A stretch of DNA of 64,000 bases, taken from sequence record MF360958.1; one strand, given 5' to 3'. The translations under genes were made by a program, and so were the position numbers. Below, piece by piece: positions 5,681-42,463 of this stretch; position 1 is the stretch's first letter, and each line of letters opens with the position of its first letter. The notes beneath the pieces were generated by a model. That model worked only from the letters and a program-made list of their open reading frames with translations, was not told the origin of the DNA and ran no database searches.

Positions 5681-6045
5681 TGTAGGTTATCATCCACAGC
5701 ATCTTTAGCAATATTTGCAACACGGTCATAACCACCTTCTTCAGTACCTTCAGAATCCATAGGTTCTCCAATGGTTTCTGTATCATTATTGATTTCATTT
5801 TCATCGATTACATTAACATATTCATTTTCATCTATTTCGAATCCATCCATATTTTCAATTTCATTTATAAGATCATCTTTAGATACTGAAAAACCCATAG
5901 TGGATAATTCATTAATTATATTATTAATATGTGTAGTTTCAATATTTTTAGTTTTAAACATAACAAGAACATCGGTTAAGCTTTTATGAAGATTATCATC
6001 AAATTTTTCTGATTGTGTTTTTTCAAAAAGATCATTTATTCTCAT
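5677..6045 (-). CDS. acidic hypothetical protein with LFE leader (putative head protein)
   Basis: starts MRINDLFEK; lies in the structural operon. Confidence 0.7.
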   Translation of the reverse strand: MRINDLFEKTQSEKFDDNLHKSLTDVLVMFKTKNIETTHINNIINELSTMGFSVSKDDLINEIENMDGFEIDENEYVNVIDENEINNDTETIGEPMDSEGTEEGGYDRVANIAKDAVDDNLQ

Positions 6046-6048
6046 AGT

Positions 6049-7032
6049 TTACTCTTGTCTGCGTTCAAAATCTTCTGAATCAAGATCTAAATCAAATTCA
6101 TCTTCATCATTGTCATTTTCTTTTTCATCATTGTCAATACTAGTATCATCATCTTCAGATTGATCTTCATCTTCAGATTGATCTTCATCTTCAGATTGAT
6201 CTTCATTTGCTTCGTCATCTTCAAGAGATCCAATATCAGGTTCATCAACCATATTTTCTTCAGAATTTTCATCACCACTTAACATATTAACAACATCATA
6301 AAAATCATCTTTGGATTGATCAATAGTTTCGAGAATATTATTTAATGCACTATTAAGTTTTTCACGAATTTGATTACCTGTTTCACTAGAATATTCAGAA
6401 TTAACCTTTTGAACAAAGCTATCTAATGTTTCATTAAGCATTTCACCAATTTTAGCTTGATAATTAAGAATATCATCAAGAAGACCCTGTGCTGCCATAA
6501 TTGTTTCAGCACGTTCAGTATCTTCATTCATTTTCATTCTTAGTTGCTGCCCTACATCATTTTTAAAAACTTCTTTTTTAAGACGACTCAACTTTTCATT
6601 AAGCTCTTTAGATTTTTCATCAAAGCCGTTAGTATGTACATAGTTTTCATATAAACTTTCAAGATGAGCAATTTTTTCTTTAGGGGATACTGTTTTTGAC
6701 ATTTTTGATTTACCTTTTTGTTCTTTATTCTCTTTTATAGATTGTCCTGACGATTTAATAATATCAATATCTGAATCATATTTTTCATTTTTCATAACAA
6801 TATCACATGCTTCAATAATTAGAAGTGCTTTATTATAGTTTTTATCTTTATGATAAGTATTATATGCACTATTTTCAACAACTTTATTTTTTAAGTTTTT
6901 AGCTTTTTCTTTAAGATTTTTAGCTCTTTCAAATGAAGAATCCATACTTAAAGTATTATTATAATTAAATGATTCTTTGAGCATTTTATTAATGCGATCC
7001 AAACGTTTTTGATTAATTCTTTTGTCAGCCAT
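6049..7032 (-). CDS. putative prohead core/scaffold-like protein
   Basis: helical composition, several (L/I/M)xE sites, very acidic C-terminal tail; function is inference. Confidence 0.55.
   Translation of the reverse strand: MADKRINQKRLDRINKMLKESFNYNNTLSMDSSFERAKNLKEKAKNLKNKVVENSAYNTYHKDKNYNKALLIIEACDIVMKNEKYDSDIDIIKSSGQSIKENKEQKGKSKMSKTVSPKEKIAHLESLYENYVHTNGFDEKSKELNEKLSRLKKEVFKNDVGQQLRMKMNEDTERAETIMAAQGLLDDILNYQAKIGEMLNETLDSFVQKVNSEYSSETGNQIREKLNSALNNILETIDQSKDDFYDVVNMLSGDENSEENMVDEPDIGSLEDDEANEDQSEDEDQSEDEDQSEDDDTSIDNDEKENDNDEDEFDLDLDSEDFERRQE
6151..6204. repeat. 3 x 18-bp perfect tandem repeat encoding (EDQSED)3
   Basis: ATCTTCAGATTGATCTTC at 6151, 6169 and 6187. Confidence 0.9.
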
Positions 7033-25521: not shown

Positions 25522-25918
25522 AGGGGTCGTTTTTGAAAATTGGCTTATAGGATGTGTCAAAAGTGATCCGAGTCTTATACAACATTTCATTAATAAGATT
25601 GATAAACAATTGATGATTAAAGCATGTGAACATAATCCTTATTGTATTAAATTTATTAAAGATCCTTCATTTGAACTAATGGCCGTATGTTTAAAATATC
25701 AACCGACTATTATAACATCAATTCCTAACAATGAAATCAAAAAGAAACACCGAGAAGAATTAGAAATTATTGCTCTTGATAATTATTGGAATTATCATTT
25801 TTATTATAGCTTTCTTTTAAGTTACTTCAATCCTCATAGTAAATGGTTTTATAAAGAAATTAATAAATTAAAACTAAAACATGGTCCAATGAAATCAACT
25901 TTAGTAAAGAAATGTTAA
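25499..25918 (+). CDS. 22-aa-repeat protein, INKxKLxxGP family (true start probably 25514)
   Basis: IKFIKDPSFELMAVC repeat; YWNYHFYY...KEINKLKLKHGP. Confidence 0.7.
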   Translation: MGMHIMIKGVVFENWLIGCVKSDPSLIQHFINKIDKQLMIKACEHNPYCIKFIKDPSFELMAVCLKYQPTIITSIPNNEIKKKHREELEIIALDNYWNYHFYYSFLLSYFNPHSKWFYKEINKLKLKHGPMKSTLVKKC

Positions 25919-29524: not shown

Positions 29525-30931
29525 TTATTCATAACCCATAACTTGACGAATTTTCTTTATTAAATCTTCATCAAGTTTGTCAGGGCTTACTTCTGGATTA
29601 AAGAACAGCTTTGATATGAGATTATCATCATTTAAATCAATAATATATTCTATGACCTCTCTCGTGGGGGAAGGTACTAATCGAATCAATGAAGGCTCTT
29701 GTTTTACAGTTTCTAATTGAACAGCCGGATATACTTCTTTCATATGTCTTATAGAATATGGATTATCTTTAACAGCTTTCATTTGTTGTTGTTCAGTTGG
29801 ATTATCGATATAAGCAATACCCTCTTGTGGGGATTGCTTAAATGCATATTCTACCATTTCATTATTTGGATATTGCCCATTACTATCATCATGCAATTGA
29901 TGTATATAATCAACATCATGTTTTAAAATATGCCACGCTTGTTTCTCTGTAATATTATCATAGTATTCTAAAGCGTGTATCGGACTGTATTGGAACACGT
30001 AATCAATCATTTTTTGTGTTGGGAACCCTTCGATTCTATTAAAAAAATTTAATGTTCTAGGTTCAATCTTTAATACTTTCCATATTATCTGTTCATTAAA
30101 TAAACCTTCATCTAGAGATCTAATAGCTTCAAAAGGATCATTTCTTATAGCAGTTTCAATAACTTTATCAGTTGGTTTTTCAATAAACCCTATGGACTCA
30201 ACATTTTTATTAACTGCCGCTAGTTGAACATCTTCAGATGGATTATCTATTTTCCTTATAATCCCCGGTATATATTCAATTATATCAATTAATGTTTCTT
30301 TTTTTAAATTATTAACATTTATTGCTTTTTGTATAATATCTAGATTTTGTACAAAAAAATCTTTAATATATTGTAATGAAATATCTATTGCATTCTTAAA
30401 CTCTTCGGGGGTACATTGTTTATCATTTTCATTATAAAATCCAACTAAATCATTTTTATCTATATCATATACTATCGCATATTTTTCATTTTCAGATTTA
30501 TTAAAAATATACATAAAAGCTTGATTTTGTATATAAAAATAATAAGCAAATTCATTTTCGGATTCGGTAGCAGCCGTACACCATTGAGTATTTTTTCCAT
30601 AAAAACAACTTGCATTTTTTGTTAATGGTATAACCATGAAGTAATCATCGTCATCATGAACAATTATGGAATCTTTTTTCTTAGATTTCTTCACTTCGGA
30701 CTTGGATTTTTCTTGTGATTTACTGTCAACAAACTCTTTAAATAGATTCCATCCTTGCTTAATCCAATACCCTATATCTTTATCTTGACCAGATATAGTA
30801 CCTTTTTTGGTTAATTGCTTAAAGGTTTCAAGGTACTGCTTTACTTCTTCCTCAGAGGCTTCCTGAGAAAATTTTTGTTGTGCATCTTTAAAAGATTCGA
30901 ATAAGTATTGTGTTATATGCTTAACTTTCAT
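29525..30931 (-). CDS. MKVKHITQYLFES-family protein (constant N-module, WC domain, about 10 degenerate 22-aa repeats)
   Basis: shared N-terminus; SCFYGKNTQWCT; IDNPSEDVQLAAV repeats. Confidence 0.85.
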   Translation of the reverse strand: MKVKHITQYLFESFKDAQQKFSQEASEEEVKQYLETFKQLTKKGTISGQDKDIGYWIKQGWNLFKEFVDSKSQEKSKSEVKKSKKKDSIIVHDDDDYFMVIPLTKNASCFYGKNTQWCTAATESENEFAYYFYIQNQAFMYIFNKSENEKYAIVYDIDKNDLVGFYNENDKQCTPEEFKNAIDISLQYIKDFFVQNLDIIQKAINVNNLKKETLIDIIEYIPGIIRKIDNPSEDVQLAAVNKNVESIGFIEKPTDKVIETAIRNDPFEAIRSLDEGLFNEQIIWKVLKIEPRTLNFFNRIEGFPTQKMIDYVFQYSPIHALEYYDNITEKQAWHILKHDVDYIHQLHDDSNGQYPNNEMVEYAFKQSPQEGIAYIDNPTEQQQMKAVKDNPYSIRHMKEVYPAVQLETVKQEPSLIRLVPSPTREVIEYIIDLNDDNLISKLFFNPEVSPDKLDEDLIKKIRQVMGYE

Positions 30932-31128
30932 CTATTTAAAACCTTCTCAATTGTTACGTCATCGAAAACAATTTCTTTATCGTTAGAATAAAACCATTGC
31001 TTAGGAACACTAATTTCAAAACGATCCATAGTTCCTTCTTTAGATACAATCATACGAACCATGGAAAAAGCAATATAGCTTCGATGAACTTGATGTTTTA
31101 CATCATTAATCATTATATAATCAAACAT
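30928..31128 (-). CDS. small hypothetical protein
   Basis: AAGGA RBS; overlaps the downstream start. Confidence 0.65.
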   Translation of the reverse strand: MFDYIMINDVKHQVHRSYIAFSMVRMIVSKEGTMDRFEISVPKQWFYSNDKEIVFDDVTIEKVLNR

Positions 31129-31137
31129 AATATTTCC

Positions 31138-31617
31138 TTATTGAATTTCATATTCAACATAAAACGTAGAGCCATCTTCTACAATATCTGTGTGTTCATA
31201 TCCTAATCTAGTTAATTGTGCCGCAGAATCAGGACGTTCCAATTTACGTTGTAAAATCTCAAATGTTGATCGTTCAAATACAGAAAAGCGCATTGTTTTC
31301 ATACGATAACGATAACGTCTAATAATATCCACAGCCAATTCAAAACACTCTTCAAAATGATTCATAGCTTGACGAACATTATTTTCTTGTTTAAGTGTAT
31401 TCATGGAACCAATAATCATATCTTCGACGTTAGGACTTTTGCTACTTGTTAAAACACAATATCCTTCATAATACACAATAATTATGAGATAAAGGTTTTT
31501 TGTCTTTCGAATAACTGTATATATAGCTTTCTTTTCAGGAATATAGCTATATTCACTATTATTAAATTCGCCTTCATTGGTTCCATATTGACTTTCAAAA
31601 AGTTCAGTTATTTTCAC
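31138..31617 (-). CDS. hypothetical protein with MKITELFES leader
   Basis: GTG start; leader motif. Confidence 0.7.
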   Translation of the reverse strand: MKITELFESQYGTNEGEFNNSEYSYIPEKKAIYTVIRKTKNLYLIIIVYYEGYCVLTSSKSPNVEDMIIGSMNTLKQENNVRQAMNHFEECFELAVDIIRRYRYRMKTMRFSVFERSTFEILQRKLERPDSAAQLTRLGYEHTDIVEDGSTFYVEYEIQ

Positions 31618-31618
31618 A

Positions 31619-32416
31619 CTAAGATTCCCATAATTTTTTATATAATTCTTTAACTTTTTCTGTTGGATTATCTATATATTGTATACTAGGACCATACTCT
31701 TTCACTGCTGCTAATTGTACTTGCTCAGTTGGATTGTCGATGTCTATTATTGATAGACCATGATCATTCATTACTTCTATTTGTACTTCTTCCGGTGCGT
31801 TATTCAGATCCATGGTTTTTTCTATTCTATTAGCATAATCTTCATACATATCTAATAAATGCTGTTTTGATAATCCTGTTTGTTTCTTAAATTCACTCTC
31901 GTTTAATGTCTCATCTAATTCATTAAAGTATTCAAACATATTCTTTCTTTTTGAATATGAAGCCGCATATTTAATATTATTATTTTTCATATATATATAA
32001 AATAACACAATGTTTCTTGTATAAAAGTATCGATTAAATGTGTTATCTTTATCAGCAGCCGTACACCATTTAGTATTTTTCCCATAATAACAACTAGCAT
32101 CTTTAGTTAGAGGAATAACTACCATTTTTTCATCATCTTCGTGAACAATAATGGAATCTTTTTTCTTAGATTTATTTATTTCGCGTTTGGTTTTTTCTTG
32201 TGATTTACTGTCAACAAATTCTTTACATAGATTCCATCCTTGCTTAATCCAGTACCCTATATCTTTCTCTTGTCCTGATATAGTACCTGTATTGGATAAT
32301 TGTTTAAACGTATTGAGGTATTGGTTTACTTCTTCTTCAGATGCTTCTTGGGGAAACTTTGCTTGTGCATCTTTATAGGACTCGAATAAGTATTGTGTTA
32401 TGTGTTTTACTTTCAT
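31619..32416 (-). CDS. MKVKHITQYLFES-family protein (2 repeats plus cap)
   Basis: true start at 32416 by homology to the paralogues, AGGA RBS and late box at 32439-32446; the track extends to 32524. Confidence 0.85.
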   Translation of the reverse strand: MKVKHITQYLFESYKDAQAKFPQEASEEEVNQYLNTFKQLSNTGTISGQEKDIGYWIKQGWNLCKEFVDSKSQEKTKREINKSKKKDSIIVHEDDEKMVVIPLTKDASCYYGKNTKWCTAADKDNTFNRYFYTRNIVLFYIYMKNNNIKYAASYSKRKNMFEYFNELDETLNESEFKKQTGLSKQHLLDMYEDYANRIEKTMDLNNAPEEVQIEVMNDHGLSIIDIDNPTEQVQLAAVKEYGPSIQYIDNPTEKVKELYKKLWES

Positions 32417-32480
32417 GAGATACATTTCCTGTTTGAAGTATTTATTGAATTGTTCACCAATAAATAATATAAAAATGATA

Positions 32481-32508
32481 TTGACAACACGATCATTTTT
32501 ACGTAAAA
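32481..32508 (+). promoter_or_regulatory. sigma70-type promoter for the sigma-factor operon
   Basis: TTGACA-16 bp-TAAAAT. Confidence 0.5.
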
Positions 32509-32542
32509 TTTGAAGAATATCCACAGCTATTCAGGAGTTATT

Positions 32543-32782
32543 ATGGAACATTATGGTGATACCAATACAACTGAAGATAATTCTATAATTACTCTTCTCA
32601 TCCTAAGTTTTATAATGGGTGTTGTATTCCATACATACGGTGGTAAAATCACAGGCAGTGATTTGTTGGAAAAAGAATCACAAAAAACATATGTTAGTGA
32701 ATCTGGTACAAGAATTATAAACAAAACCTCCAAATCAACACTGAAGCAAAAAACATATCCAAAATCTATTTTTGACAAATAA
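32543..32782 (+). CDS. small membrane-anchored protein
   Basis: AGGAG RBS before ATG 32543; one TM segment. Confidence 0.65.
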   Translation: MEHYGDTNTTEDNSIITLLILSFIMGVVFHTYGGKITGSDLLEKESQKTYVSESGTRIINKTSKSTLKQKTYPKSIFDK

Positions 32783-32799
32783 AACTATAGGAGTTGTGT

Positions 32800-33648
32800 A
32801 TGAATAACATCATTCCCGTATGCAGCAATGATGAAGAATTTATTAAATCTATTATGAAAATTTCCACGCCTGATCGTGAAACAGAACAAAGTATGTTTAA
32901 ATATTGGAACGAAACAGGTGATCAAGAAACAGCCCGGAGCATTGTTCTATCTCATATGAAATTTGTAGTCCATATTGCTTCTAATTATAAATATCATGGC
33001 ATTCCCCAAGCAGAACTTATCCAGCAAGGTTCCATTGGGCTTATGAAAGCATTGGAACGTTTTGATGTTTCAAAGGGTTGGCGTTTTGCAACTTATGCAG
33101 CTCATTGGATTAAATATGCAATATCTGAATTTGTTATTACTAATGTAAAAACATTGAAAATTGCAACAACAAAACCCCAACGCAAATTGTTTTACAATCT
33201 TAATCGTTATATTTCTGATGGTAGCCGTTGGCTGAATTATGATGAAAAACAATACATTGCTGATGAACTTGATGTGAAAATTTCAGACGTTGAAACTATG
33301 GAAGAACGTTTAAAACAAAAAGAATATTATGTTACCTACATGGATAGTGACCAAGAAGATCAATGGGATGGTCAGGCATATAAAGAATCGTGGTTAGCTG
33401 ATGGTAATGAAAGTTTAGAAGATCAATACATTGAAACTGTTGATAATAATAAACAAATTCAATTAATGAGAAATCAAATGAATCAGCTTAATGATCGTGA
33501 TCGGTATATTATTGAAAGAAGGCATATTGATGAGGATAAAGCTACTCTCAATGAATTGGCTGAAATTTATGATGTATCATGTGAACGAGTACGCCAGCTT
33601 GAAAATAATGCTCTAAAGAAATTGAGAAAAGCTTTAACAACACAATAA
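32800..33648 (+). CDS. rpoH: RNA polymerase sigma factor, RpoH (sigma-32)-like
   Basis: region 2.1 LSHMKFVVHIASNY; 2.2 ELIQQGSIGLMKA; RpoH box IATTKPQRKLFYNL; region 4.2 TLNELAEIYDVSCERVRQLE. Confidence 0.9.
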   Translation: MNNIIPVCSNDEEFIKSIMKISTPDRETEQSMFKYWNETGDQETARSIVLSHMKFVVHIASNYKYHGIPQAELIQQGSIGLMKALERFDVSKGWRFATYAAHWIKYAISEFVITNVKTLKIATTKPQRKLFYNLNRYISDGSRWLNYDEKQYIADELDVKISDVETMEERLKQKEYYVTYMDSDQEDQWDGQAYKESWLADGNESLEDQYIETVDNNKQIQLMRNQMNQLNDRDRYIIERRHIDEDKATLNELAEIYDVSCERVRQLENNALKKLRKALTTQ

Positions 33649-33676
33649 TAAAGCCAGCATTAATGCTGGCTTTATT
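33647..33676. terminator. bidirectional terminator between convergent genes
   Basis: 30-bp perfect palindrome AATAAAGCCAGCATTAATGCTGGCTTTATT. Confidence 0.85.
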
Positions 33677-34812
33677 TATACTAGATCTAGTATACTCGTG
33701 GCTTTTGTCTCTCTGCTTATACCGTATTTTTCCAATGTATTACCAACTTTAATATTTAAATCGTTTTGAAATTCATCACTTATTACACCTTTATGTTTAT
33801 TACTTTCAGACATTTGTTTTACAATTTCCAATGTCAACAATGATCTTAAATACTTATTATTTTTGGTAGTAAATGAAGTGGATGAATAGTATATTTCTTC
33901 ATCAATGCTTACCGAAATAAAATTAGCATCGTATTGAAAAGTTCCAGTATTAATTTGGCGTTTATCACCTTTAATGGTTATTTTTACAGGTAACGTATAA
34001 CGTTGAATCACTTTTCCATTATCCATATGATTGGTGTAGCCTTCTTCAATACCTAATGGTGTTATCTCATAAGTCGTATATTGTGTTGGAAAACTTATAC
34101 TAAGTTCTTGTTCCAGTTGTTCTATATCAACAGCGTCCGATTCAAGTTTGTTTCTAAATTCAATCAGTGTTTTTTCAGTAGGTTCTTTTAATTCATTATC
34201 ACGATATTGTACTTCAACGATTACTCTAGTTTTTCGATTTGCAATAATGGCATACTTATCATAGCGTGTATGAATAATGTATATATCGTGAACTTCATTA
34301 TACGTTTCAAAATGGTTATCACTTCCTCGGGATGAAATACACCATCTTGTTTCAGAACCTAAGTGACATGATGCTTCTTTGGTATGAGGCTTAACCACTT
34401 TCCAATCATCACCTTTAGTTACTAGTTTATATTCTGATTTAAGTTCTTTTTCATAACGTTTTTGTTCAATACGAGACTCCCAATTAATGAGAGTTTCGAT
34501 AATTAAACTATGAAATGCATCCAATCGTTGTAAAACCTCATCTTGTTCTACAGATTTGTTGAGATATTTTGTCCACATGCTGGCATCTTTTGCCTTATCC
34601 GGCGCTTTACTTCCACCACTTATTACTAATAGAATATTACTTTTAACTAATTTAGAAAAAATATCGACAGGATGTTGATCTTTTATACCCATATCGTTAG
34701 CATGACTTCGAATATCATTTAATGTATTGTCAAAATTGTACTCATTGGCAATATTATCATATGCGTTTTTAAGATCTTTGTAATTTTCAAATAAAATATG
34801 CTTTACTTTCAT
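33676..34812 (-). CDS. divergent WC-domain protein with MKVKHILFEN leader
   Basis: VVKPHTKEASCHLGSETRWCISS aligns with VIPLTKDASCYYGKNTKWCT; late box at 34839-34846. Confidence 0.75.
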   Translation of the reverse strand: MKVKHILFENYKDLKNAYDNIANEYNFDNTLNDIRSHANDMGIKDQHPVDIFSKLVKSNILLVISGGSKAPDKAKDASMWTKYLNKSVEQDEVLQRLDAFHSLIIETLINWESRIEQKRYEKELKSEYKLVTKGDDWKVVKPHTKEASCHLGSETRWCISSRGSDNHFETYNEVHDIYIIHTRYDKYAIIANRKTRVIVEVQYRDNELKEPTEKTLIEFRNKLESDAVDIEQLEQELSISFPTQYTTYEITPLGIEEGYTNHMDNGKVIQRYTLPVKITIKGDKRQINTGTFQYDANFISVSIDEEIYYSSTSFTTKNNKYLRSLLTLEIVKQMSESNKHKGVISDEFQNDLNIKVGNTLEKYGISRETKATSILDLV

Positions 34813-34856
34813 GAACTTATTCCAATGTGTATATGAATTATTTATCTAAAAAAAGT

Positions 34857-34885
34857 TTGACAACAGTGTTATTTTTTCCTATAAT
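34857..34885 (+). promoter_or_regulatory. consensus sigma70 promoter
   Basis: TTGACA-17 bp-TATAAT, with an A-tract upstream. Confidence 0.85.
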
Positions 34886-34910
34886 GGGTACATATTGTTA
34901 AGGAGATCTT

Positions 34911-36095
34911 GTGATGACTACTTATACCGCCAATATTCCTTCTGAAAACATTACAAAACTTACAAACGAAATCGGTAAGCTCAACAAAAAAGCTGTAAAG
35001 CTTGGCTGTGATGAAATCGATGTTCATCTTGGCGAAAAGTCTTACAAGAAAATCACCAACAACTCTGTAGAAGAAAGTAACTCTTATCGCGAATACATTG
35101 AGATCACTATTGAAGGCCCTACGCCTACTTTTAGCGGTTGGACTTTCCTTAGTCGTATTGAACATACCGACAGCGGTAACATCATTGCAAAGTACAACTT
35201 CGCAGATGGTATCGACATTCCTCATGAGTATCACCATACTGATGAAAAGCTCTGTGAACATTGTAATACTCGTCGTCATCGTAATAACACCTATCTGGTT
35301 GTTCACGAAGATGGTGAAATTAAGCAAGTAGGTAGCAACTGCCTTAAAGATTTCCTTGGTTTCAATTCTCCCGAACGTGTCCTGAACATTTGCACCATGA
35401 TCAGCGAGCATATCAGCAATGCTGAAAATGATGGTGATACTTATGCAGGTTCTTCTCAGGTTGTACCTATGTATTATGTTCCTGAAGTTCTCGCATATGC
35501 TGATTCACTTATTGAGCGTGAAGGTTTTCGTAATGCGCGTCATGATGATCCTACAGGTGGTATTGTTGAAAACGCTCTTAACGATCCTCTTAAATTTAAA
35601 AAGATTATGGGTGTTGATGAAATCGAACAGCGCAACTATGACAAAGCTCATAATGTTATTGACTGGTTTGCTTCTGAGCCTATTAAGGAAGATGATAGCG
35701 AATACATTATTAACCTCAAGGTAGCTATTAATGAAGGTTATATTTCGCATCGTAACATCAATCTTGTTGTGAGTGCTGTCCATGTTTACAATAAGCAAAT
35801 GGATAAGATCAAGCAAAACAAAAAGCCTTCCGAGCATCTTGGAAATATTGGTGACCGCATGAATTTTGGTCAGTGTGAAATTATTTTCATCCATTGTTTC
35901 AAAACTCAATTTGGAACTTCTATGCTTATCAAATTCCGTGATGAAGACGGTAATATGATTGCGTGGTTCTCTAGTCGTGTACGGGATGTTAAGAAAGGTG
36001 ATGTATACAACCTCATGGCTACTGTTAAGAATCATGATGAATATAAAAGTGTTAAGGAAACTGTTGTGAAGAATGCTAAACTTCACGAAGTATAA
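34911..36095 (+). CDS. phage early-type protein with CEHC zinc-finger-like motif and C-terminal OB-fold-like domain
   Basis: LCEHCNTRRHRN..QVGSNCLKDF; EHLGNIGDR..WFSS..TVK.H.EY..VKET; AAGGAG RBS; host-like codons. Confidence 0.65.
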   Translation: MMTTYTANIPSENITKLTNEIGKLNKKAVKLGCDEIDVHLGEKSYKKITNNSVEESNSYREYIEITIEGPTPTFSGWTFLSRIEHTDSGNIIAKYNFADGIDIPHEYHHTDEKLCEHCNTRRHRNNTYLVVHEDGEIKQVGSNCLKDFLGFNSPERVLNICTMISEHISNAENDGDTYAGSSQVVPMYYVPEVLAYADSLIEREGFRNARHDDPTGGIVENALNDPLKFKKIMGVDEIEQRNYDKAHNVIDWFASEPIKEDDSEYIINLKVAINEGYISHRNINLVVSAVHVYNKQMDKIKQNKKPSEHLGNIGDRMNFGQCEIIFIHCFKTQFGTSMLIKFRDEDGNMIAWFSSRVRDVKKGDVYNLMATVKNHDEYKSVKETVVKNAKLHEV

Positions 36096-36101
36096 TAATT
36101 A

Positions 36102-36139
36102 GATACCAAAGGTTGATAGTAGACACAGCCTCTGGTATC
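36102..36139. other. intergenic hairpin
   Basis: GATACCA.AGGTTG / CAGCCT.TGGTATC 14-bp stem with one mismatch and one wobble; no T-tract. Confidence 0.45.
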
Positions 36140-36164
36140 ATTTGTTCATATTTGGAGTATTGTA

Positions 36165-36446
36165 ATGGCTAAAGACGAACAGAATTGTCTCTATAAATCT
36201 CAGGATAAATGGCTCAATGGTGTCATTGGTGGTATTTGTGAACATTATGATTGGGATAAAAATTTAGGCCGTATTCTGGTTATTATTGCAATGATTGCCG
36301 GATTATGTGGTGTTGTTATTATCACATATATTGCTTTGATGTTTTTTATGACTGATCCAGAAAACGATAATGAACAACAAAACAATGATGATCAAAATGA
36401 TGAGCATTATTGCGAAACTGATGAGTATGACGATGGTAAGGTATAA
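36165..36446 (+). CDS. pspC: PspC-domain membrane protein
   Basis: LYKSQDKWLNGVIGGICEHY..GRIL..TM..YIA..FFM matches the PspC N-terminal domain pattern. Confidence 0.75.
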   Translation: MAKDEQNCLYKSQDKWLNGVIGGICEHYDWDKNLGRILVIIAMIAGLCGVVIITYIALMFFMTDPENDNEQQNNDDQNDEHYCETDEYDDGKV

Positions 36447-36448
36447 GT

Positions 36449-36661
36449 ATGAAATTAGGTCACTATTTTGTTAAAAAGTATGAATATTATTACAATGATA
36501 CTGTGTGTTATGAAACAAAGTTTCTTTGGTTTCCTACAGTTGTAGGAGACTTTTTCAAAGACGGTATTGAACTAAGATGGTTGGGTTGGGGAAGAATCTA
36601 CTGGTTATGGAATGTAACCTATGGTTGGCATAAAATTCGTTTCACAGAAGATGAACAATAA
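36449..36661 (+). CDS. small Trp-rich hypothetical protein
   Basis: ORF in the operon; AAGG RBS. Confidence 0.65.
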   Translation: MKLGHYFVKKYEYYYNDTVCYETKFLWFPTVVGDFFKDGIELRWLGWGRIYWLWNVTYGWHKIRFTEDEQ

Positions 36662-36673
36662 TAAGGTTAATTT

Positions 36674-37420
36674 ATGAGATATGATCTATACGGATTCGTA
36701 AATACCGATAATGATAATTGTCTGTATTTCGATGATTGCGATAAGACTTATAAACAAAAAGATATTATTTCTAGTTACAGATCACGCGACCTTTATGTTC
36801 ATCTATACAGTAACTGGATGAGTGCAAAAATAAAAAATCTTCATAAACAATATGACGTTATTACTCTTGTAATGGATCATGAAACGTTAAATCATTATCA
36901 AGAGAATAATTATATTAATAAAATTCTATCAGAAATGTCGAAAAATGAAAAAAATGACGCAGCGCGTTTGAATATCATTTCAATGCATCAAAACGCAGGT
37001 AATGGTGCATTTAGTACATATTGTATATTTTATTTTCGTTCAAATGATGATCGTCCATCTCTACAAAATTATTACACACTATGTTCATATCAAGATAATA
37101 CAAAGGAAGATGCTTTTATTCATTGTGAACAAGCACTAAAAGCTAATTGTGCGAATGAATCAAAAACTCATTGTGTTATTACAATGGGTCATGGCTTGGT
37201 CTTTGAAAAGTATAAGGAAACTCAATATGAAGGATTCTTTCGTGCAACGTTGAAAGAAAGTTTTAATGAATCAAAAGGAAAATTTGAACTATCATTCCCG
37301 CAAGGCGTTCATAACAGTTTTACGGAACACGATGACAAATTCATTAACCTAACAACCTATAAGCAACCGCCTGTTGAAGATTTATATGATAGAGAATTTG
37401 ATGAAGATTGGGTTGGCTAA
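36674..37420 (+). CDS. hypothetical protein (248 aa)
   Basis: ORF in the operon; AAGG RBS. Confidence 0.75.
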   Translation: MRYDLYGFVNTDNDNCLYFDDCDKTYKQKDIISSYRSRDLYVHLYSNWMSAKIKNLHKQYDVITLVMDHETLNHYQENNYINKILSEMSKNEKNDAARLNIISMHQNAGNGAFSTYCIFYFRSNDDRPSLQNYYTLCSYQDNTKEDAFIHCEQALKANCANESKTHCVITMGHGLVFEKYKETQYEGFFRATLKESFNESKGKFELSFPQGVHNSFTEHDDKFINLTTYKQPPVEDLYDREFDEDWVG

Positions 37421-37421
37421 A

Positions 37422-38756
37422 TTATTTTTTCAACGATTGAACAAAATCGTCTAAATCATTCATTTCATCTTTTTGTACATCATCAGGATTAGTGTATGAT
37501 TTTTGAGTTAATTTCTCGTATTGTTTTATAACTTTATCACTAGGGTTTTCAATGTTTGCTATAATTTTTGGATATTCTTTAACAGCTTCTAACTGTATCT
37601 TTTCCGAAGGATTATCTATATAATTTATAGACCATGGATTTTGTTTTACTGCTTCTAGTTGTATTCGTTCTGTAGGGTTATTTATAAATCTAATATTTGA
37701 GCTATCTCGTTTCACTGCTTCTAACTGTATTTTTTCAGAAGGATTATCTATAAATCTAATATTTGAGCTATCACGTTTTACTGCTTCTAATTGAACTTCT
37801 TCTGAAGGATTATCTATGAACTGAATATTTTCACCATTATATTTAACAGCTTTCATTTTCATTTCTTCTGTAGGATTATCTATAAATCGAATACTAGGTC
37901 CACTTTGTGTAACAGCTTTCATTTTCATTTCTTCTGTAGGATTATCTATAAAATCTATAGATGATGGTTTATTTTTTATAGCTTCTAATTTGACATCATC
38001 TGATGGATTTTTTATTTGTTTTATTATAAGACCGTCTTCTTTTACTGCTTCGAGTTGTAGTTTTTCAGAAGGATTCTTTATACTAGGAAATTTATTAATA
38101 TTTAGTTGTATAATATTTAATTGATCTTCTTCCGAAGCATTATTAATATCTCTCATACTTTCTATTTTTTCTTCATTTTCATTATACCATATATATAATT
38201 CATCAGTAGTTATATCTGTTTGTTTTTTAAATTGACTTTCATCTATACCTTCATCCATATTATTAAAGTATTCAAATTTATTCAACATTTTTGAGTATAC
38301 AGCAGCAAATTTTTCATTATTAGTTTTCATATATACATAAAACAATACAATGTTTTTAAGATAAAAGTATTCATTAAATTTGTTATTTTCATTACCGGAA
38401 GTACACCATTTAGTATTTTTTCCGTAATAACAACTAGCATCTTTAGTCAGAGGAATAACTACCATTTTCTCATTATCTTCGTGAGCAATGATAGAATCTT
38501 TTTTCTTAGATTTCTTTACTTCACTTTTACTTTTCTCTTGAGATTTACTATCCACGAATTCCTTAAATGAATTCCAGCCTTGTTTAATCCAATACCCTAT
38601 ATCTTTCTCTTGTCCTGATACTGTGCCTTTCTTAGCTAATTGCTTAAAGGTATCAAGGTATTGCTTCACTTCTTCCTCAGATGCTTCTTGAGCAAATTTT
38701 GATTGGGCATCTTTATAGGACTCGAATAAGTATTGTGTTATATGTTTAATTTTCAT
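37422..38756 (-). CDS. MKVKHITQYLFES-family protein (9 regular 22-aa repeats)
   Basis: shared N-module; repeats SIxFIDNPSExxQLEAVK; 37844-37886 = 37910-37952 exact 43 bp at a 66-nt period. Confidence 0.9.
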   Translation of the reverse strand: MKIKHITQYLFESYKDAQSKFAQEASEEEVKQYLDTFKQLAKKGTVSGQEKDIGYWIKQGWNSFKEFVDSKSQEKSKSEVKKSKKKDSIIAHEDNEKMVVIPLTKDASCYYGKNTKWCTSGNENNKFNEYFYLKNIVLFYVYMKTNNEKFAAVYSKMLNKFEYFNNMDEGIDESQFKKQTDITTDELYIWYNENEEKIESMRDINNASEEDQLNIIQLNINKFPSIKNPSEKLQLEAVKEDGLIIKQIKNPSDDVKLEAIKNKPSSIDFIDNPTEEMKMKAVTQSGPSIRFIDNPTEEMKMKAVKYNGENIQFIDNPSEEVQLEAVKRDSSNIRFIDNPSEKIQLEAVKRDSSNIRFINNPTERIQLEAVKQNPWSINYIDNPSEKIQLEAVKEYPKIIANIENPSDKVIKQYEKLTQKSYTNPDDVQKDEMNDLDDFVQSLKK

Positions 38757-38757
38757 T

Positions 38758-40401
38758 TTATGATTCGCCTGTTTTAATAAAATCTTTTACATCTTTTAAT
38801 AACTCATCGGATATTGGATATAATAAACCATCCAATACTTCTTTTTGTTTTTCTAAAACAGATTTTTTAAATATACTGAGTTGATCTTTATTATTCTCAC
38901 CAATAATGTGTTTAATAATATATTTAATCATTGATAGTTTTAAATCGTCTGTTATTTTATCCAATAATTTAATCAACGGTAGATAACTGTTTAGATTATC
39001 TTCAACATTACGGAGCATCTGATCATTAAATTCTATGTTAATACTATCCTTTTTCATAGATTTTATACTATCAACGACTTGTTTAATATATTTCTCCATA
39101 TCAACCGGAGTATTAGATTCTATTATAGACTTGGCAATATAATCTATATTGCTATTATTGATAATTTTATAATCAACAAGTTTTTCAAATGTAAGATATT
39201 TACTGTCTAAAATAAAAAATAATTTATCAATTTGCTTATTCCTTTTAGAATAATTTGAAAAATGTGATTCTAATATATTAATTAAATTGTTATCTATTAA
39301 ATCATTTTTTATTAAATATACTAGCAATCTTAACGTATCATTTTCCAATGATTCTTTTAATAATGATTCTTTATCTGAAACATACTCATAAGCGTTTCTC
39401 CAAATTAAATTTCTAAGGAAGTCATATTCACTATAAATCTTATGATTCTTAGAATGGTCAATGAAGCTTAATATATTGTTTTCATTAGAGTTTTCAAAAA
39501 ATAATTCTTTTATAGGTTCAAAATTAACATTTGCTGGACTCATATTTTCTATACTAAATAACAAATAATTATCAATCATGCCAAAAATGTATTCCGTAGA
39601 GGTATGTTTTATATTATTCCATAATGAATTGATTTTTTTACTTAAATAACTATTATAAATTAATCTAAAACTAGCTCGTTTATCTTTAGAAATATTATAA
39701 ATTAGATCATCATCAACATTATCCAACTCATAGAATAAACTACTATCTTCTTTAATTAGATCAACTTTATCACTAGTAGAAGCGGAACTAATATCCATTG
39801 ATTTCATAATTGTTTGTTTATATTCATTAAACAGTTTACGCAAATAATCATCATCAATAGATGTAAATTGTTTGAATTGTTTTTGAGAAATAGATTTATC
39901 CATCTCATTAAAGAATTCAAATTTATCAACTTCTTGAGAATATGCACCAGCATATTTTTTTCCTGATTTTTTTATAAACACATAAAACAATACAATATTC
40001 TTTAAATAAAAATAATTTGCAAACTCATTATCTTCATCACCTGCGGTACACCATTTAGTATTCTTTCCGTAATAACAACTCGAATCTTTACTTAAAGGAA
40101 TAACCACTATTTTTTTGTCATCATCATGAGCAATAATAGATTCGCTTTTTTTACTTTTCTTTACCTGTGATTTAGATTTTTCCTGCGACTTGCTATCCAC
40201 GAATTCCTTGAACAAATTCCATCCTTGCTTGATCCAATACCCTATATCTTTCTCTTGTCCTGATACTGTGCCTTTCTTAGCTAATTGCTTAAAGGTATCG
40301 AGGTATTGCTTCACTTCTTCCTCAGAAGCTTCTTGAGCAAACTTTGCTTGTGCATCCTTATAGGACTCAAATAAGTATTGTGTTATATGTGTAACTTTCA
40401 T
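38758..40401 (-). CDS. MKVKHITQYLFES-family protein with an unrelated helical C-terminal tail
   Basis: shared N-module with a 68-bp DNA stretch identical to 37422..38756; no NP repeats in the tail. Confidence 0.9.
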   Translation of the reverse strand: MKVTHITQYLFESYKDAQAKFAQEASEEEVKQYLDTFKQLAKKGTVSGQEKDIGYWIKQGWNLFKEFVDSKSQEKSKSQVKKSKKSESIIAHDDDKKIVVIPLSKDSSCYYGKNTKWCTAGDEDNEFANYFYLKNIVLFYVFIKKSGKKYAGAYSQEVDKFEFFNEMDKSISQKQFKQFTSIDDDYLRKLFNEYKQTIMKSMDISSASTSDKVDLIKEDSSLFYELDNVDDDLIYNISKDKRASFRLIYNSYLSKKINSLWNNIKHTSTEYIFGMIDNYLLFSIENMSPANVNFEPIKELFFENSNENNILSFIDHSKNHKIYSEYDFLRNLIWRNAYEYVSDKESLLKESLENDTLRLLVYLIKNDLIDNNLINILESHFSNYSKRNKQIDKLFFILDSKYLTFEKLVDYKIINNSNIDYIAKSIIESNTPVDMEKYIKQVVDSIKSMKKDSINIEFNDQMLRNVEDNLNSYLPLIKLLDKITDDLKLSMIKYIIKHIIGENNKDQLSIFKKSVLEKQKEVLDGLLYPISDELLKDVKDFIKTGES

Positions 40402-40413
40402 TTTACATATGCC

Positions 40414-41715
40414 TTATGGTGTATATTCTTTTAGATTTCCTGATTCGTTCAATTCATATTCAGTAGCTTTTTCATTCCATGTTTCTTTACTTTGTGCATA
40501 TTGTTCTAGTTGTTTTAGAAATTCTTTTGCTGTATCCCACTTTTGCATACCTACGGCTCTTGCAGCATAAATAGCAAGCCAGTGAACTTCATTATAAGGT
40601 ACTAATCTGTCATATTGTCTGGCGTAAGTAAGCAAGCCTTTGTTTATTTCTTCTCTATATTCTTCAAAGTCTTTTTCAAACCATTCCGCGTTATTTTTTA
40701 ACTCTTGGTCTATTCTTTTTAAAAATTTATCTGTGTTTTCAATATATTCTAATACTTTATTCAATTTTTCTTTAACAGCTTCATAACCGTCTTTATCAGA
40801 ACCGTATTTCATTTGATGGGTCATACGATGAATAAGATCTCCTGTATGTTCAATAACAACATTCAAAACACCCCCACCTATAAGATGTTGTAGCCTAACC
40901 ATAACAGTTTCGGGCTTGCCTCTTTGTTCTTCGCCAATTATAGAAAATTCTTCTCGAACAAACTTTGGCATTTCATCATTGGAATCATTATCATCTTCGT
41001 TAATATTTTCTTTATCTCTAAGCAATTCATCGACATGATATAAGAAACGTTTCATAAATCGTTTCCAAACACGTTGATCTCTTACATCAGAACTTTTAAA
41101 GAATTGATCAAAATAATCAGTAAAGGTTGGACTCATTTTTGAATTACCTAATTTACGAATAAGTTCATCACTTTTAAGATATTTTTCCAACTTATCAGGA
41201 TCAACATTTTTATCTCGTAATTGTTGAGCCGCATTAATTGCATACGCTTCAATTTCTTTTTTCTGCGATAAGTATTCTTTCCAAGATTTTTCATGTTGGA
41301 AATCTTTTCTTCGAACTGTCGATACAGAGTCTTTATAATTAGCTCTTAATGTTTGAATAACATGAACCATCTCATGAACAATCATTTGTCGTAATTCGAA
41401 TAAAAAGTTATCTATATCATTATTCATTTTTTCTTTATTAAAAAGAAAATTAGCGGTCAATAATATAGCTTCTTCTTTTTTATTATCAACACTAACTGAA
41501 ATATCAGCATAGTTAGGTTTTGTATGAGAACGTACTGATACTTCAGTAGGAATTTCTATATCATAATCATTGAGTATATCTTTAAGAGCACGTTTCACAA
41601 CAGTGGTAAAATTTTTCACATCATCATTGGTTGCGAGATGTTTTTTAAGAACATCCTGAACATGATCTTCTATTTGTTTCGATGATATAGCTTCGGTGAT
41701 TTGTTTAACTTTCAT
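40414..41715 (-). CDS. two-domain protein with MKVKQITEA leader and zincin-like HExxH domain
   Basis: IVHEMVHVIQ...EIEAYA; internal INEDDNDS linker. Confidence 0.7.
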   Translation of the reverse strand: MKVKQITEAISSKQIEDHVQDVLKKHLATNDDVKNFTTVVKRALKDILNDYDIEIPTEVSVRSHTKPNYADISVSVDNKKEEAILLTANFLFNKEKMNNDIDNFLFELRQMIVHEMVHVIQTLRANYKDSVSTVRRKDFQHEKSWKEYLSQKKEIEAYAINAAQQLRDKNVDPDKLEKYLKSDELIRKLGNSKMSPTFTDYFDQFFKSSDVRDQRVWKRFMKRFLYHVDELLRDKENINEDDNDSNDEMPKFVREEFSIIGEEQRGKPETVMVRLQHLIGGGVLNVVIEHTGDLIHRMTHQMKYGSDKDGYEAVKEKLNKVLEYIENTDKFLKRIDQELKNNAEWFEKDFEEYREEINKGLLTYARQYDRLVPYNEVHWLAIYAARAVGMQKWDTAKEFLKQLEQYAQSKETWNEKATEYELNESGNLKEYTP

Positions 41716-41731
41716 ATTCGTTTCCCGTTAG

Positions 41732-42463
41732 TTATTTATATAATTCCTTTACTTTTTCAGTGGGATTATCAATAGAATCAATACGATCAGGTTCATCTTT
41801 TAAAATTTCTATTTGGATATCTTCAGGTGTATTATCCAAATCCATTGCATGGTATAAAAAATCTTCATATTTGAGATATAACCTATCTAACATATTTTCA
41901 TCGATATTAAATTTATCTTTAATTATTTCCAATTGTTCATCTTCTAATTCTTCATCATATTCATTAACATATTCAATTTCTTCTGTACTATCAAAAGTTG
42001 GATATTTTATAGCAATTTTTTCATCACTTATTTTAGATAATACATAAAATAAAACAGTTTGGAATTGATAAAAATATTGATTAAACTTATTATCTTCATA
42101 ACCAGAAGTACACCATTTAGTATTTTTTCCGTAGTAACAACTAGCATCTTTAGTCAGAGGAATAACTATCATTTTCTCATCATCTTCATGAGCAATAATG
42201 GAATCGCTTTTTTTACCTTTTTTTACTTGAGATTTACTTTTCTCTTGCGATTTACTATCCACAAATTCTTTAAATGAATTCCAGCCCTGCTTTATCCAAT
42301 ACCCTATATCTTTTTCCTGCCCTGATACAGTACCTTTTTTAGCTAGTTGCTTAAAGATATCAAGGTATTGCTTTACTTCTTCATCAGAAGCTTCCTGAGC
42401 AAATTTTGCTTGTGCATCTTTATAGGATTCAAATAAATATTGTGTGATGTGTTTAACTTTCAT
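41732..42463 (-). CDS. MKVKHITQYLFES-family protein (shortest; 1 repeat plus cap)
   Basis: shared N-module; ends IDNPTEKVKELYK. Confidence 0.9.
   Translation of the reverse strand: MKVKHITQYLFESYKDAQAKFAQEASDEEVKQYLDIFKQLAKKGTVSGQEKDIGYWIKQGWNSFKEFVDSKSQEKSKSQVKKGKKSDSIIAHEDDEKMIVIPLTKDASCYYGKNTKWCTSGYEDNKFNQYFYQFQTVLFYVLSKISDEKIAIKYPTFDSTEEIEYVNEYDEELEDEQLEIIKDKFNIDENMLDRLYLKYEDFLYHAMDLDNTPEDIQIEILKDEPDRIDSIDNPTEKVKELYK

Follow-up and report, generated by a model that had tools for sequence, protein, structure and literature searches.

Does a bacteriophage possess a heat-shock sigma factor of its own and, if so, which promoters would it serve? The question is raised by a locus of Salicola phage SCTP-2, lying in the window analysed here, a stretch of 64,000 nucleotides identical in sequence to bases 1-64000 of accession MF360958.1. 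SCTP-2 is a jumbo phage from an Italian solar saltern, described as virulent-type, which infects Salicola sp. PV4 and has a genome of 440,001 bp with a G+C content of 30%. The gene concerned, gp39, had been singled out from the DNA letters alone (the original prediction) as a sigma-32 (RpoH)-like factor that either switches on the heat-shock regulon of the host or redirects RNA polymerase to middle promoters of the phage. GenBank already lists the product of gene 39 as 'RNAP sigma-32 factor-like protein; RpoH homologue', so the identity of the gene is public and what is new is the analysis rather than the discovery of the gene. The reading favoured here, with a probability of roughly 0.55, is that gp39 encodes a functional, phage-adapted sigma factor of the RpoH family which would drive the host heat-shock regulon together with an hsp20 gene of the phage.

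The motifs on which the original prediction relied are all present in the gp39 open reading frame (ORF), namely KIATTKPQRKLFYNLNRY, WRFATYAAHWIKYAI and CERVRQLENN, and the Escherichia coli RpoH strings given alongside them are correct: chain E of PDB entry 8hkc contains vattkaqrklffnl, vhwik and ervrqle. Comparison of gp39 with that chain gave an E value of 1e-56. Pfam matches were obtained to Sigma70_r2 (45 bits) and Sigma70_r4 (54 bits), the former being the sole match to that family across the whole SCTP-2 genome. Three sigma-32 models ranked highest among the NCBIfam profiles. The score against the sigma-32 subfamily model NF005143 was 272.9 bits (cut-off 241), and that against the TIGR02392 rpoH_proteo equivalog was 267.8 bits, under its cut-off of 323.1, which marks gp39 as a diverged member of the family and not a standard orthologue. 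The best models for other sigma factors were MzaA (123 bits) and RpoS (120.7 bits). With the sigma-32 profiles scoring best and the GenBank label in agreement, the assignment as a sigma-32-like factor holds, and a full-length RpoH-type sigma factor gene is supported by the sequence. Its start codon is the ATG at 32800, with GGAG ahead of it, identical to the GenBank start (ORF bounds 32794/32800-33648). In length (282 as against 284 amino acids) and in domain order gp39 resembles bacterial RpoH, as known from E. coli (PDB 8HKC) and other gamma- and betaproteobacteria.

A word-based search of 5.8 billion proteins returned as the closest protein P0002, with 70% identity, encoded by a 1.4-kb metagenome contig (L003) from run SRR18572991. 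Beyond it the same search found only bacterial RpoH proteins at 47% identity or less, led by those of Halomonas and Celerinatantimonas. The best identity across 121 genomes of Salicola's order was 46%, a search of IMG/VR gave no close viral relatives, and no recent donor of gp39 was present in the data examined. Salicola belongs to the Halomonadaceae in the NCBI taxonomy and Halomonas is among the top matches, so that an ancient acquisition from the lineage of the host would at least fit. Between gp39 and P0002, pN was 0.19 and pS 0.63, yielding a dN/dS of approximately 0.16 with synonymous sites near saturation; these values indicate purifying selection. The contig carrying P0002 also has a small ORF with a gp38-like tail (..TYPxS..) directly 5' of the sigma gene and a similar hairpin 3' of it; the gene downstream differs from that in SCTP-2.

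Two trees were calculated. The first, a quick IQ-TREE analysis (LG+C20) of 70 bacterial RpoH proteins with RpoD, RpoS and FliA of five gammaproteobacteria, placed gp39 and P0002 inside the RpoH clade (SH-aLRT 96), within its gammaproteobacterial part and on a stem of 2.9 substitutions per site. After addition of diverged RpoH-like proteins from IMG/VR, the pair became sister to gamma- and betaproteobacterial RpoH, again inside RpoH (SH-aLRT 96). The length of the stem branch was 1.7-2.9 substitutions per site across the two trees.

The residue pattern of the two phage proteins was compared with 208 gamma- and betaproteobacterial RpoH sequences, using E. coli numbering. Among 108 columns conserved in at least 90% of the bacterial proteins, 63 are kept by both phage proteins, 34 are changed in both and 11 are changed in one. 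The core-binding stretch LIQ.G.IGLMKA, including Q80, I84 and M87, is retained by gp39. So are the His-Trp wedge H107-W108 (AAHWIK), which replaces the Trp-Trp of sigma-70, and the residues T128 and K130 (IATTK). L253, E265, R266 and R268 are all identical, with Cys in place of the neighbouring A264. In the structure of the sigma-32 open complex, I84 and M87 contact the clamp helices, the wedge melts DNA, T128 and K130 form the spacer and extended -10 contacts, and L253, E265, R266 and R268 read the -35 element (PMC10216364). The RpoH box had been called intact, which is slightly overstated: gp39 reads QRKLFYNLN where bacteria have QRKLFFNLR, matching at seven of nine positions, and its two changes, F137Y and R140N (the last residue), fall at positions invariant in all 208 bacterial proteins. 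P0002 has QRKLFFNLN. Further residues changed in both phage copies are G70Y, Y71H, N83S, P95V, V99W/L, L101F, F104Y, W121V, P197K, D233N, S236D and the A264C already mentioned, R140N likewise being common to the two. There are insertions in gp39 too: a single residue follows the RpoH box and four precede region 4. It differs from bacterial RpoH, then, in being carried by a jumbo phage at the G+C content of that phage, in its low identity and in these changes at near-invariant positions.

One change falls in a region that governs the amount of sigma-32 in the cell. Leu47, Ala50, Lys51 and Ile54 make up the homeostatic control region, which binds SRP (the signal recognition particle; Ffh), DnaK and DnaJ, and mutation of which raises sigma-32 in level and in activity (PMC3866087, PMC4823717). 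Of the 208 bacterial proteins, 207 have L, V or I at position 47, where gp39 has Q and P0002 has D; the patch is otherwise as in most bacteria, with A50, R51 and V54 in gp39. The P197K change adjoins the DnaK site at 198-201, within which the W-L pair at 200-201 is kept. We read the pattern as a whole as that of a protein in which the parts for binding core polymerase and for reading a TTGAA-type -35 element have been kept, while the -10 helix and one control residue have moved.

The promoters that such a factor might serve were sought across the phage. The scan for CTTGAA-N13-15-CCCCAT envisaged in the original prediction yielded no exact site in 440 kb, six sites with one mismatch (3.1 ± 2.1 expected) and 58 with two (77 ± 9 expected), almost all of them within ORFs; SCTP-2 therefore has no excess of such sites. 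The intergenic 8-mers that were enriched correspond to ribosome-binding sites, to TTGACA and to xATAAATA, the T4-late-type boxes. Of the 86 intergenic TTGACA sites, most have a TAtAAT-like box 16-18 nt further on. Neither intergenic k-mers nor gapped dyads revealed a third promoter class, the dyads representing terminators alone, and intergenic sites containing TTGAAA had no common downstream element. Relaxed patterns (TTGAA-N14-17-CC[CT]AT.T and similar) matched no intergenic site other than that of hsp20. As there is neither an excess of sigma-32-like sites nor a third intergenic class, redirection of RNA polymerase to middle promoters of the phage is not supported.

For a graded search, a matrix was built from the 13 best sigma-32-type sites upstream of groES, ibpA and grpE of the gammaproteobacteria Marinobacter, Vreelandella, Klebsiella, Pseudomonas and Vibrio, of the form cccCTTGAAa-N13-15-CCCCAT with zero to three mismatches. 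The matrix was scored on both strands, approximately 880,000 positions, with 20 simulated genomes as controls. The training sites themselves score 19.7-31.2 bits and the best sites of the simulated genomes 16.0-20.8 bits; the genome-wide maximum (Table 1) falls inside the first range and exceeds the second. Among the 15 best sites it alone is intergenic, and it ends 74 nt before the start codon of gp437, which is annotated in GenBank as 'Hsp20-like' and also recovered by family search. The second-best site, at 25527 on the minus strand (20.9 bits), was dismissed as a chance match, since it runs antisense within genes and its score falls in the range of the simulated maxima. Hsp20 proteins of the gp437 kind are widespread among T4-like marine phages (26-33% identity), and identity to Salmonella IbpA/B-type proteins is 30%; the promoter was thus not brought in by recent capture of a host gene. 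The hsp20 genes of cyanophages have TTGACA-type promoters.

For the predicted leader of the SCTP-2 hsp20 transcript (genome 349012-349097), folding gives a pair of hairpins (-18.6 kcal/mol, z -2.6). In an arrangement like that of RNA thermometers, the start codon and the AGGAGG ribosome-binding site are covered by the second hairpin, an AU-rich one. An Rfam scan of the leader found no known RNA thermometer.

The sigma gene itself appears to be expressed from a different class of promoter. The sigma-70-type promoter that the original prediction placed ahead of it is real, with 11 of 12 consensus matches, and stands just outside the segment then highlighted, upstream of gp38, between that gene and the divergent gp37. 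That segment, 32543-33676, does hold the sigma gene; it spans gp38 and the terminator hairpin in addition to gp39. Matches of at least 11 of 12 to the TTGACA/TATAAT class number 106 in SCTP-2 as against 54 ± 8 in simulated genomes, and 49 of the 106 are in non-coding DNA, which makes up 7% of the genome. This class appears to be the early promoter class of SCTP-2, and the copy upstream of gp38 is likely to be the early promoter of a gp38-gp39 transcript. The two genes are likely to be co-transcribed: 17 nt separate the end of gp38 from the start of gp39, and no other promoter-like site was found in that gap. No Pfam or PHROG family match was obtained for gp38. The strong terminator reported after gp39 was confirmed as a hairpin (Table 1) lying between the convergent genes gp39 and gp40 and common to both, and it is predicted to act as a bidirectional intrinsic terminator. 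It is of the same type as the AAAGCC...GGCTTT hairpins, the most enriched intergenic dyad in SCTP-2.

Family searches over the phage found a GroES-like protein, gp293, annotated as hypothetical and scoring over the Cpn10/GroES cut-off, and a weaker Cpn10-like ORF, gp170; no GroEL, DnaK or DnaJ was found in SCTP-2 by these searches. The gene for gp293 lies beside that for a T4 gp44-like clamp loader, downstream of a TTGACA-type promoter. A phage that encodes GroES-like and Hsp20 proteins and no GroEL, DnaK or DnaJ would need the heat-shock regulon of its host.

We infer the following course of events, from the timing of expression and the binding of core polymerase to promoter choice and release from feedback. 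The sigma-70 polymerase of the host would transcribe gp39 early in infection, together with the small membrane-type gp38, and the product would join the core RNA polymerase of the host. The resulting holoenzyme would initiate at sigma-32-type promoters (CCCTTGAA-N13-15-CCCCAT-like), of which the first target would be the host heat-shock regulon (GroEL/ES, DnaK/J and proteases) and the second the hsp20 gene of the phage, behind the sole sigma-32-type promoter of its genome. The GroEL, DnaK and other chaperones so induced would work with the GroES-like protein and Hsp20 of the phage, and the feedback that the host exerts through chaperones, SRP and FtsH may be relaxed by the substitutions at Leu47 and beside the DnaK site. 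The conserved DNA-contact and core-binding residues, the hsp20 promoter and the hydrophilic residue at position 47 make the heat-shock role plausible, and it is likewise plausible that the switch would operate independently of host control, as the original prediction had supposed. A more ambitious proposal, that SCTP-2 possesses a self-contained viral heat-shock module composed of an early sigma-32 that sheds feedback, a wired Hsp20 with a thermometer-like leader and a GroES-like protein using host GroEL, is tentative and on balance rather doubtful; were it true, the chaperones of the host could not shut the response off.

Several observations weigh against the favoured reading. Approximately unbiased (AU) tests do not reject a placement of the phage pair outside all bacterial RpoH (p 0.40), nor a tree in which the pair joins RpoD and RpoS (p 0.17, the log-likelihood being lower by 21.5). 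The phylogenetic check raised from the outset, made here against bacterial RpoH, thus places the pair within RpoH in the best two trees and leaves other placements unrejected; the trees favour RpoH and are not decisive, and it is on profile scores and signature residues that the assignment to the family rests. In sigma factors, the upstream part of the -10 element is recognised by the helix of region 2.4. Here bacterial RpoH has HWIK-AEIHE-Y and the phage proteins HWIK-YAISE-F; A111Y, E112A and H114S/A are present in both phage copies, at positions kept in at least 95% of the 208 bacterial proteins, and promoter specificity may therefore have drifted. Invariant residues that contact the polymerase are altered as well, namely E81Q at the clamp-helix interface and W244H/F at the flap-tip interface (PMC10216364 for their roles). 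The hsp20 promoter is a single promoter and so a single observation. Finally, pelagiphage HTVC008M, for which no sigma match was obtained, possesses a comparable CTTGAA-N16-TTATATAAATA (TTATAT) upstream of its hsp20. Host sigma-32 alone could serve the SCTP-2 promoter, and a phage without an RpoH of its own may, on the HTVC008M pattern, use that of its host. Both sites would fit hsp20 promoters tuned to the heat-shock sigma of the host.

In the HTVC008M site (L255:225-265), a sigma-32-like -35 box is correctly spaced from a box that also equals the T4-late consensus. Compared with the SCTP-2 site, it has matching spacing and agrees at 9 of the 12 bases in the -10 region.

The changes in region 2.4 bear most directly on the strongest rival, in which gp39 has been re-tooled, its altered helix reading an AT-rich -10 element, and acts as a middle or delayed-early sigma factor at phage promoters that do not resemble those of sigma-32. 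Phage sigma factors serving phage promoters are the classical case, exemplified by SPO1 gp28 and T4 gp55. Three near-invariant residues of region 2.4 are changed in both copies and region 2.3 looks more sigma-70-like (F104Y, N94D); the stem branch is very long, and CCCCAT is costly in a phage genome of 30% G+C. Such a factor should nevertheless have promoters, and the enriched intergenic elements are fully described by ribosome-binding sites, TTGACA/TATAAT, xATAAATA and terminators, with nothing shared downstream of the TTGAAA sites. The residues that read the -35 element are unaltered, and the one clear match in the genome is a canonical-looking sigma-32 promoter. Re-tooling is accordingly considered unlikely, though it is the alternative that best withstands the data.

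Phages depend on the chaperones of their hosts and can also raise sigma-32 without encoding it. The T4-like phage RB43 does so through Rki, a J-domain protein acting on DnaK (PMC3486835), and phage lambda through CIII, an inhibitor of FtsH (PMC1838920). By analogy, gp39 could be mainly a decoy or competitor which soaks up DnaK/DnaJ, SRP or FtsH and so stabilises host sigma-32, or which competes with sigma-70 for core polymerase as the host is taken over, any promoter-specific transcription by gp39 itself then being of secondary importance; A50, R51, V54 and the W-L pair of the DnaK site are kept, so some chaperone contacts may persist. Purifying selection has maintained the DNA-contact residues H107/W108, K130 and E265/R266/R268, of which a decoy would have no need, and the loss of Leu47 argues against efficient titration of the SRP/FtsH route. 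This explanation is less probable again than re-tooling. That gp39 is a functionless, hitch-hiking remnant of a captured host gene, as its low identity to any bacterial RpoH and its score under the TIGR02392 cut-off might suggest, is highly improbable given an intact reading frame, the low dN/dS with near-saturated synonymous sites, the conserved gp38-gp39-hairpin order, a base composition the same as the rest of the phage and the retention of 63 of the 108 near-invariant positions in both copies.

A phage-adapted RpoH acting on the host regulon would resemble Rki and lambda CIII as an early phage function giving a higher heat-shock response to the benefit of the phage. It differs in that those proteins stabilise host sigma-32 indirectly, whereas SCTP-2 carries a sigma-32 of its own, which would represent a more direct takeover of the stress regulon of the host. 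Bacillus phages offer another parallel in their homologues of host sporulation sigma factors (Schwartz et al., mSphere 2022, PMC9429907), which are likewise phage copies of a host alternative sigma factor that may act on a host regulon; they are SigF/SigG-like rather than RpoH, and both host group and regulon differ. That paper makes no mention of RpoH or heat shock (PMC9429907), and searches of the literature turned up no paper describing an RpoH from a phage. In the jumbo-phage survey of Iyer et al. (2021), which included SCTP-2, the sigma factors of group 2 (T4-like) were only minimal gp55-type and RpoD-like ones (PMC7824862). SCTP-2 shares with the surveyed phages the lack of its own RNA polymerase, a reliance on sigma-type factors and the xATAAATA boxes; gp39 differs in being RpoH-type, and the RpoD-like viral sigma factors in IMG/VR group with RpoD, away from gp39.

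Wider occurrence was assessed by scanning IMG/VR with the RpoH alignment. RpoH was the best sigma family for genes on three large viral contigs, L156 (77 kb), L157 (214 kb) and, more weakly, L159 (409 kb), and some of the ORFs neighbouring the viral RpoH-like genes resemble SCTP-2 genes; other viral sigma genes in the scan were RpoD-like. On a further contig, L160 (363 kb), an RpoH-like sigma at 6001-6527 stops after the RpoH box (143 amino acids), with a region 4.2 remnant in another frame at 6444-6527, and represents either a decaying copy, a shortened sigma factor or a sequencing error. If the more ambitious proposal of a viral heat-shock module is true, the diverged RpoH-like factors on other viral contigs of 77-409 kb would point to a recurrent strategy of jumbo phages and not a one-off. 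The substitutions in gp39, which affect among other parts the control patch, the final residue of the RpoH box and region 2.4, would constitute a natural experiment separating the parts for promoter reading from those for feedback, and gp39 with the sigma-32-type hsp20 promoter would form a simple, testable circuit.

Other candidates from the scan were set aside. Two contigs (L154, L155) have ordinary bacterial RpoH genes at their ends. A 'provirus' (IMG/VR_UViG_3300013307_000669; G166/L158) was rejected as a second phage example because the neighbouring genes are bacterial-looking. They encode a full-length RpoD with the non-essential region, two DnaJ proteins, DsbC, ThyA and an ankyrin protein, and the RpoH-like gene is next to Hsp20 with a CTTGAA-N14-GACCAT promoter; the contig is probably low-G+C bacterial DNA rather than phage.

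Table 1. Features of the gp38-gp39 locus and of the chaperone genes of SCTP-2, in positions of the phage genome (the window being bases 1-64000).
Feature	Position	Strand	Description
Sigma-70-type promoter	32481..32509	+	TTGACA-17-TAAAAT; 11/12 matches; divergent gap gp37/gp38
gp38	32543..32782	+	79 aa; one hydrophobic (membrane-type) segment; Ser/Lys/Thr-rich tail
gp39	32800..33648	+	282 aa; RpoH (sigma-32)-family sigma factor; region 2, near-intact RpoH box, region 4.2
Terminator hairpin (predicted)	~33647..33676		13-bp, GC-cored, AAAGCCAGCA-TTAA-TGCTGGCTTT; -18.1 kcal/mol
gp170	171932-172210		Weaker Cpn10-like ORF; 18 bits
gp293	275595-275909		GroES-like; annotated hypothetical; Cpn10/GroES 30.5 bits, over cut-off
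Sigma-32-type site	348975-349008		CCCCCTTGAA-N15-ACCTATATA; matrix 23.6 bits, genome-wide maximum
gp437	349080-349601		Hsp20 gene; GenBank 'Hsp20-like'; family search

The sigma gene is located within a duplicated gene family. The genes on either side of it, gp37 and gp40, are paralogues (window 29525-42463) which have in common a C-x-x-G-x-x-T-[KR]-W-C motif and, N-terminally, an MKVKH... module, and match phrog_17056 and phrog_28193; DUF4116 repeats are present in gp34 and gp45 of the same region. The annotated GTG start of gp37 (32524, minus strand) is probably too far upstream. The paralogue gp40 begins MKVKHI..., and since the same peptide begins at 32416 in gp37, that position is probably the start (window 32416-32524). 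A gp37 shortened in this way would leave a divergent promoter region of 126 bp containing the gp38-gp39 promoter. A perfect sigma-70 consensus, TTGACA-17-TATAAT, occurs nearby at window 34857-34885 on the plus strand, approximately 25 nt ahead of gp41. Elsewhere in the SCTP-2 genome (169793-170257), the GenBank annotation records a GreA-like transcription elongation factor, gp168, another part borrowed from the transcription machinery of the host.

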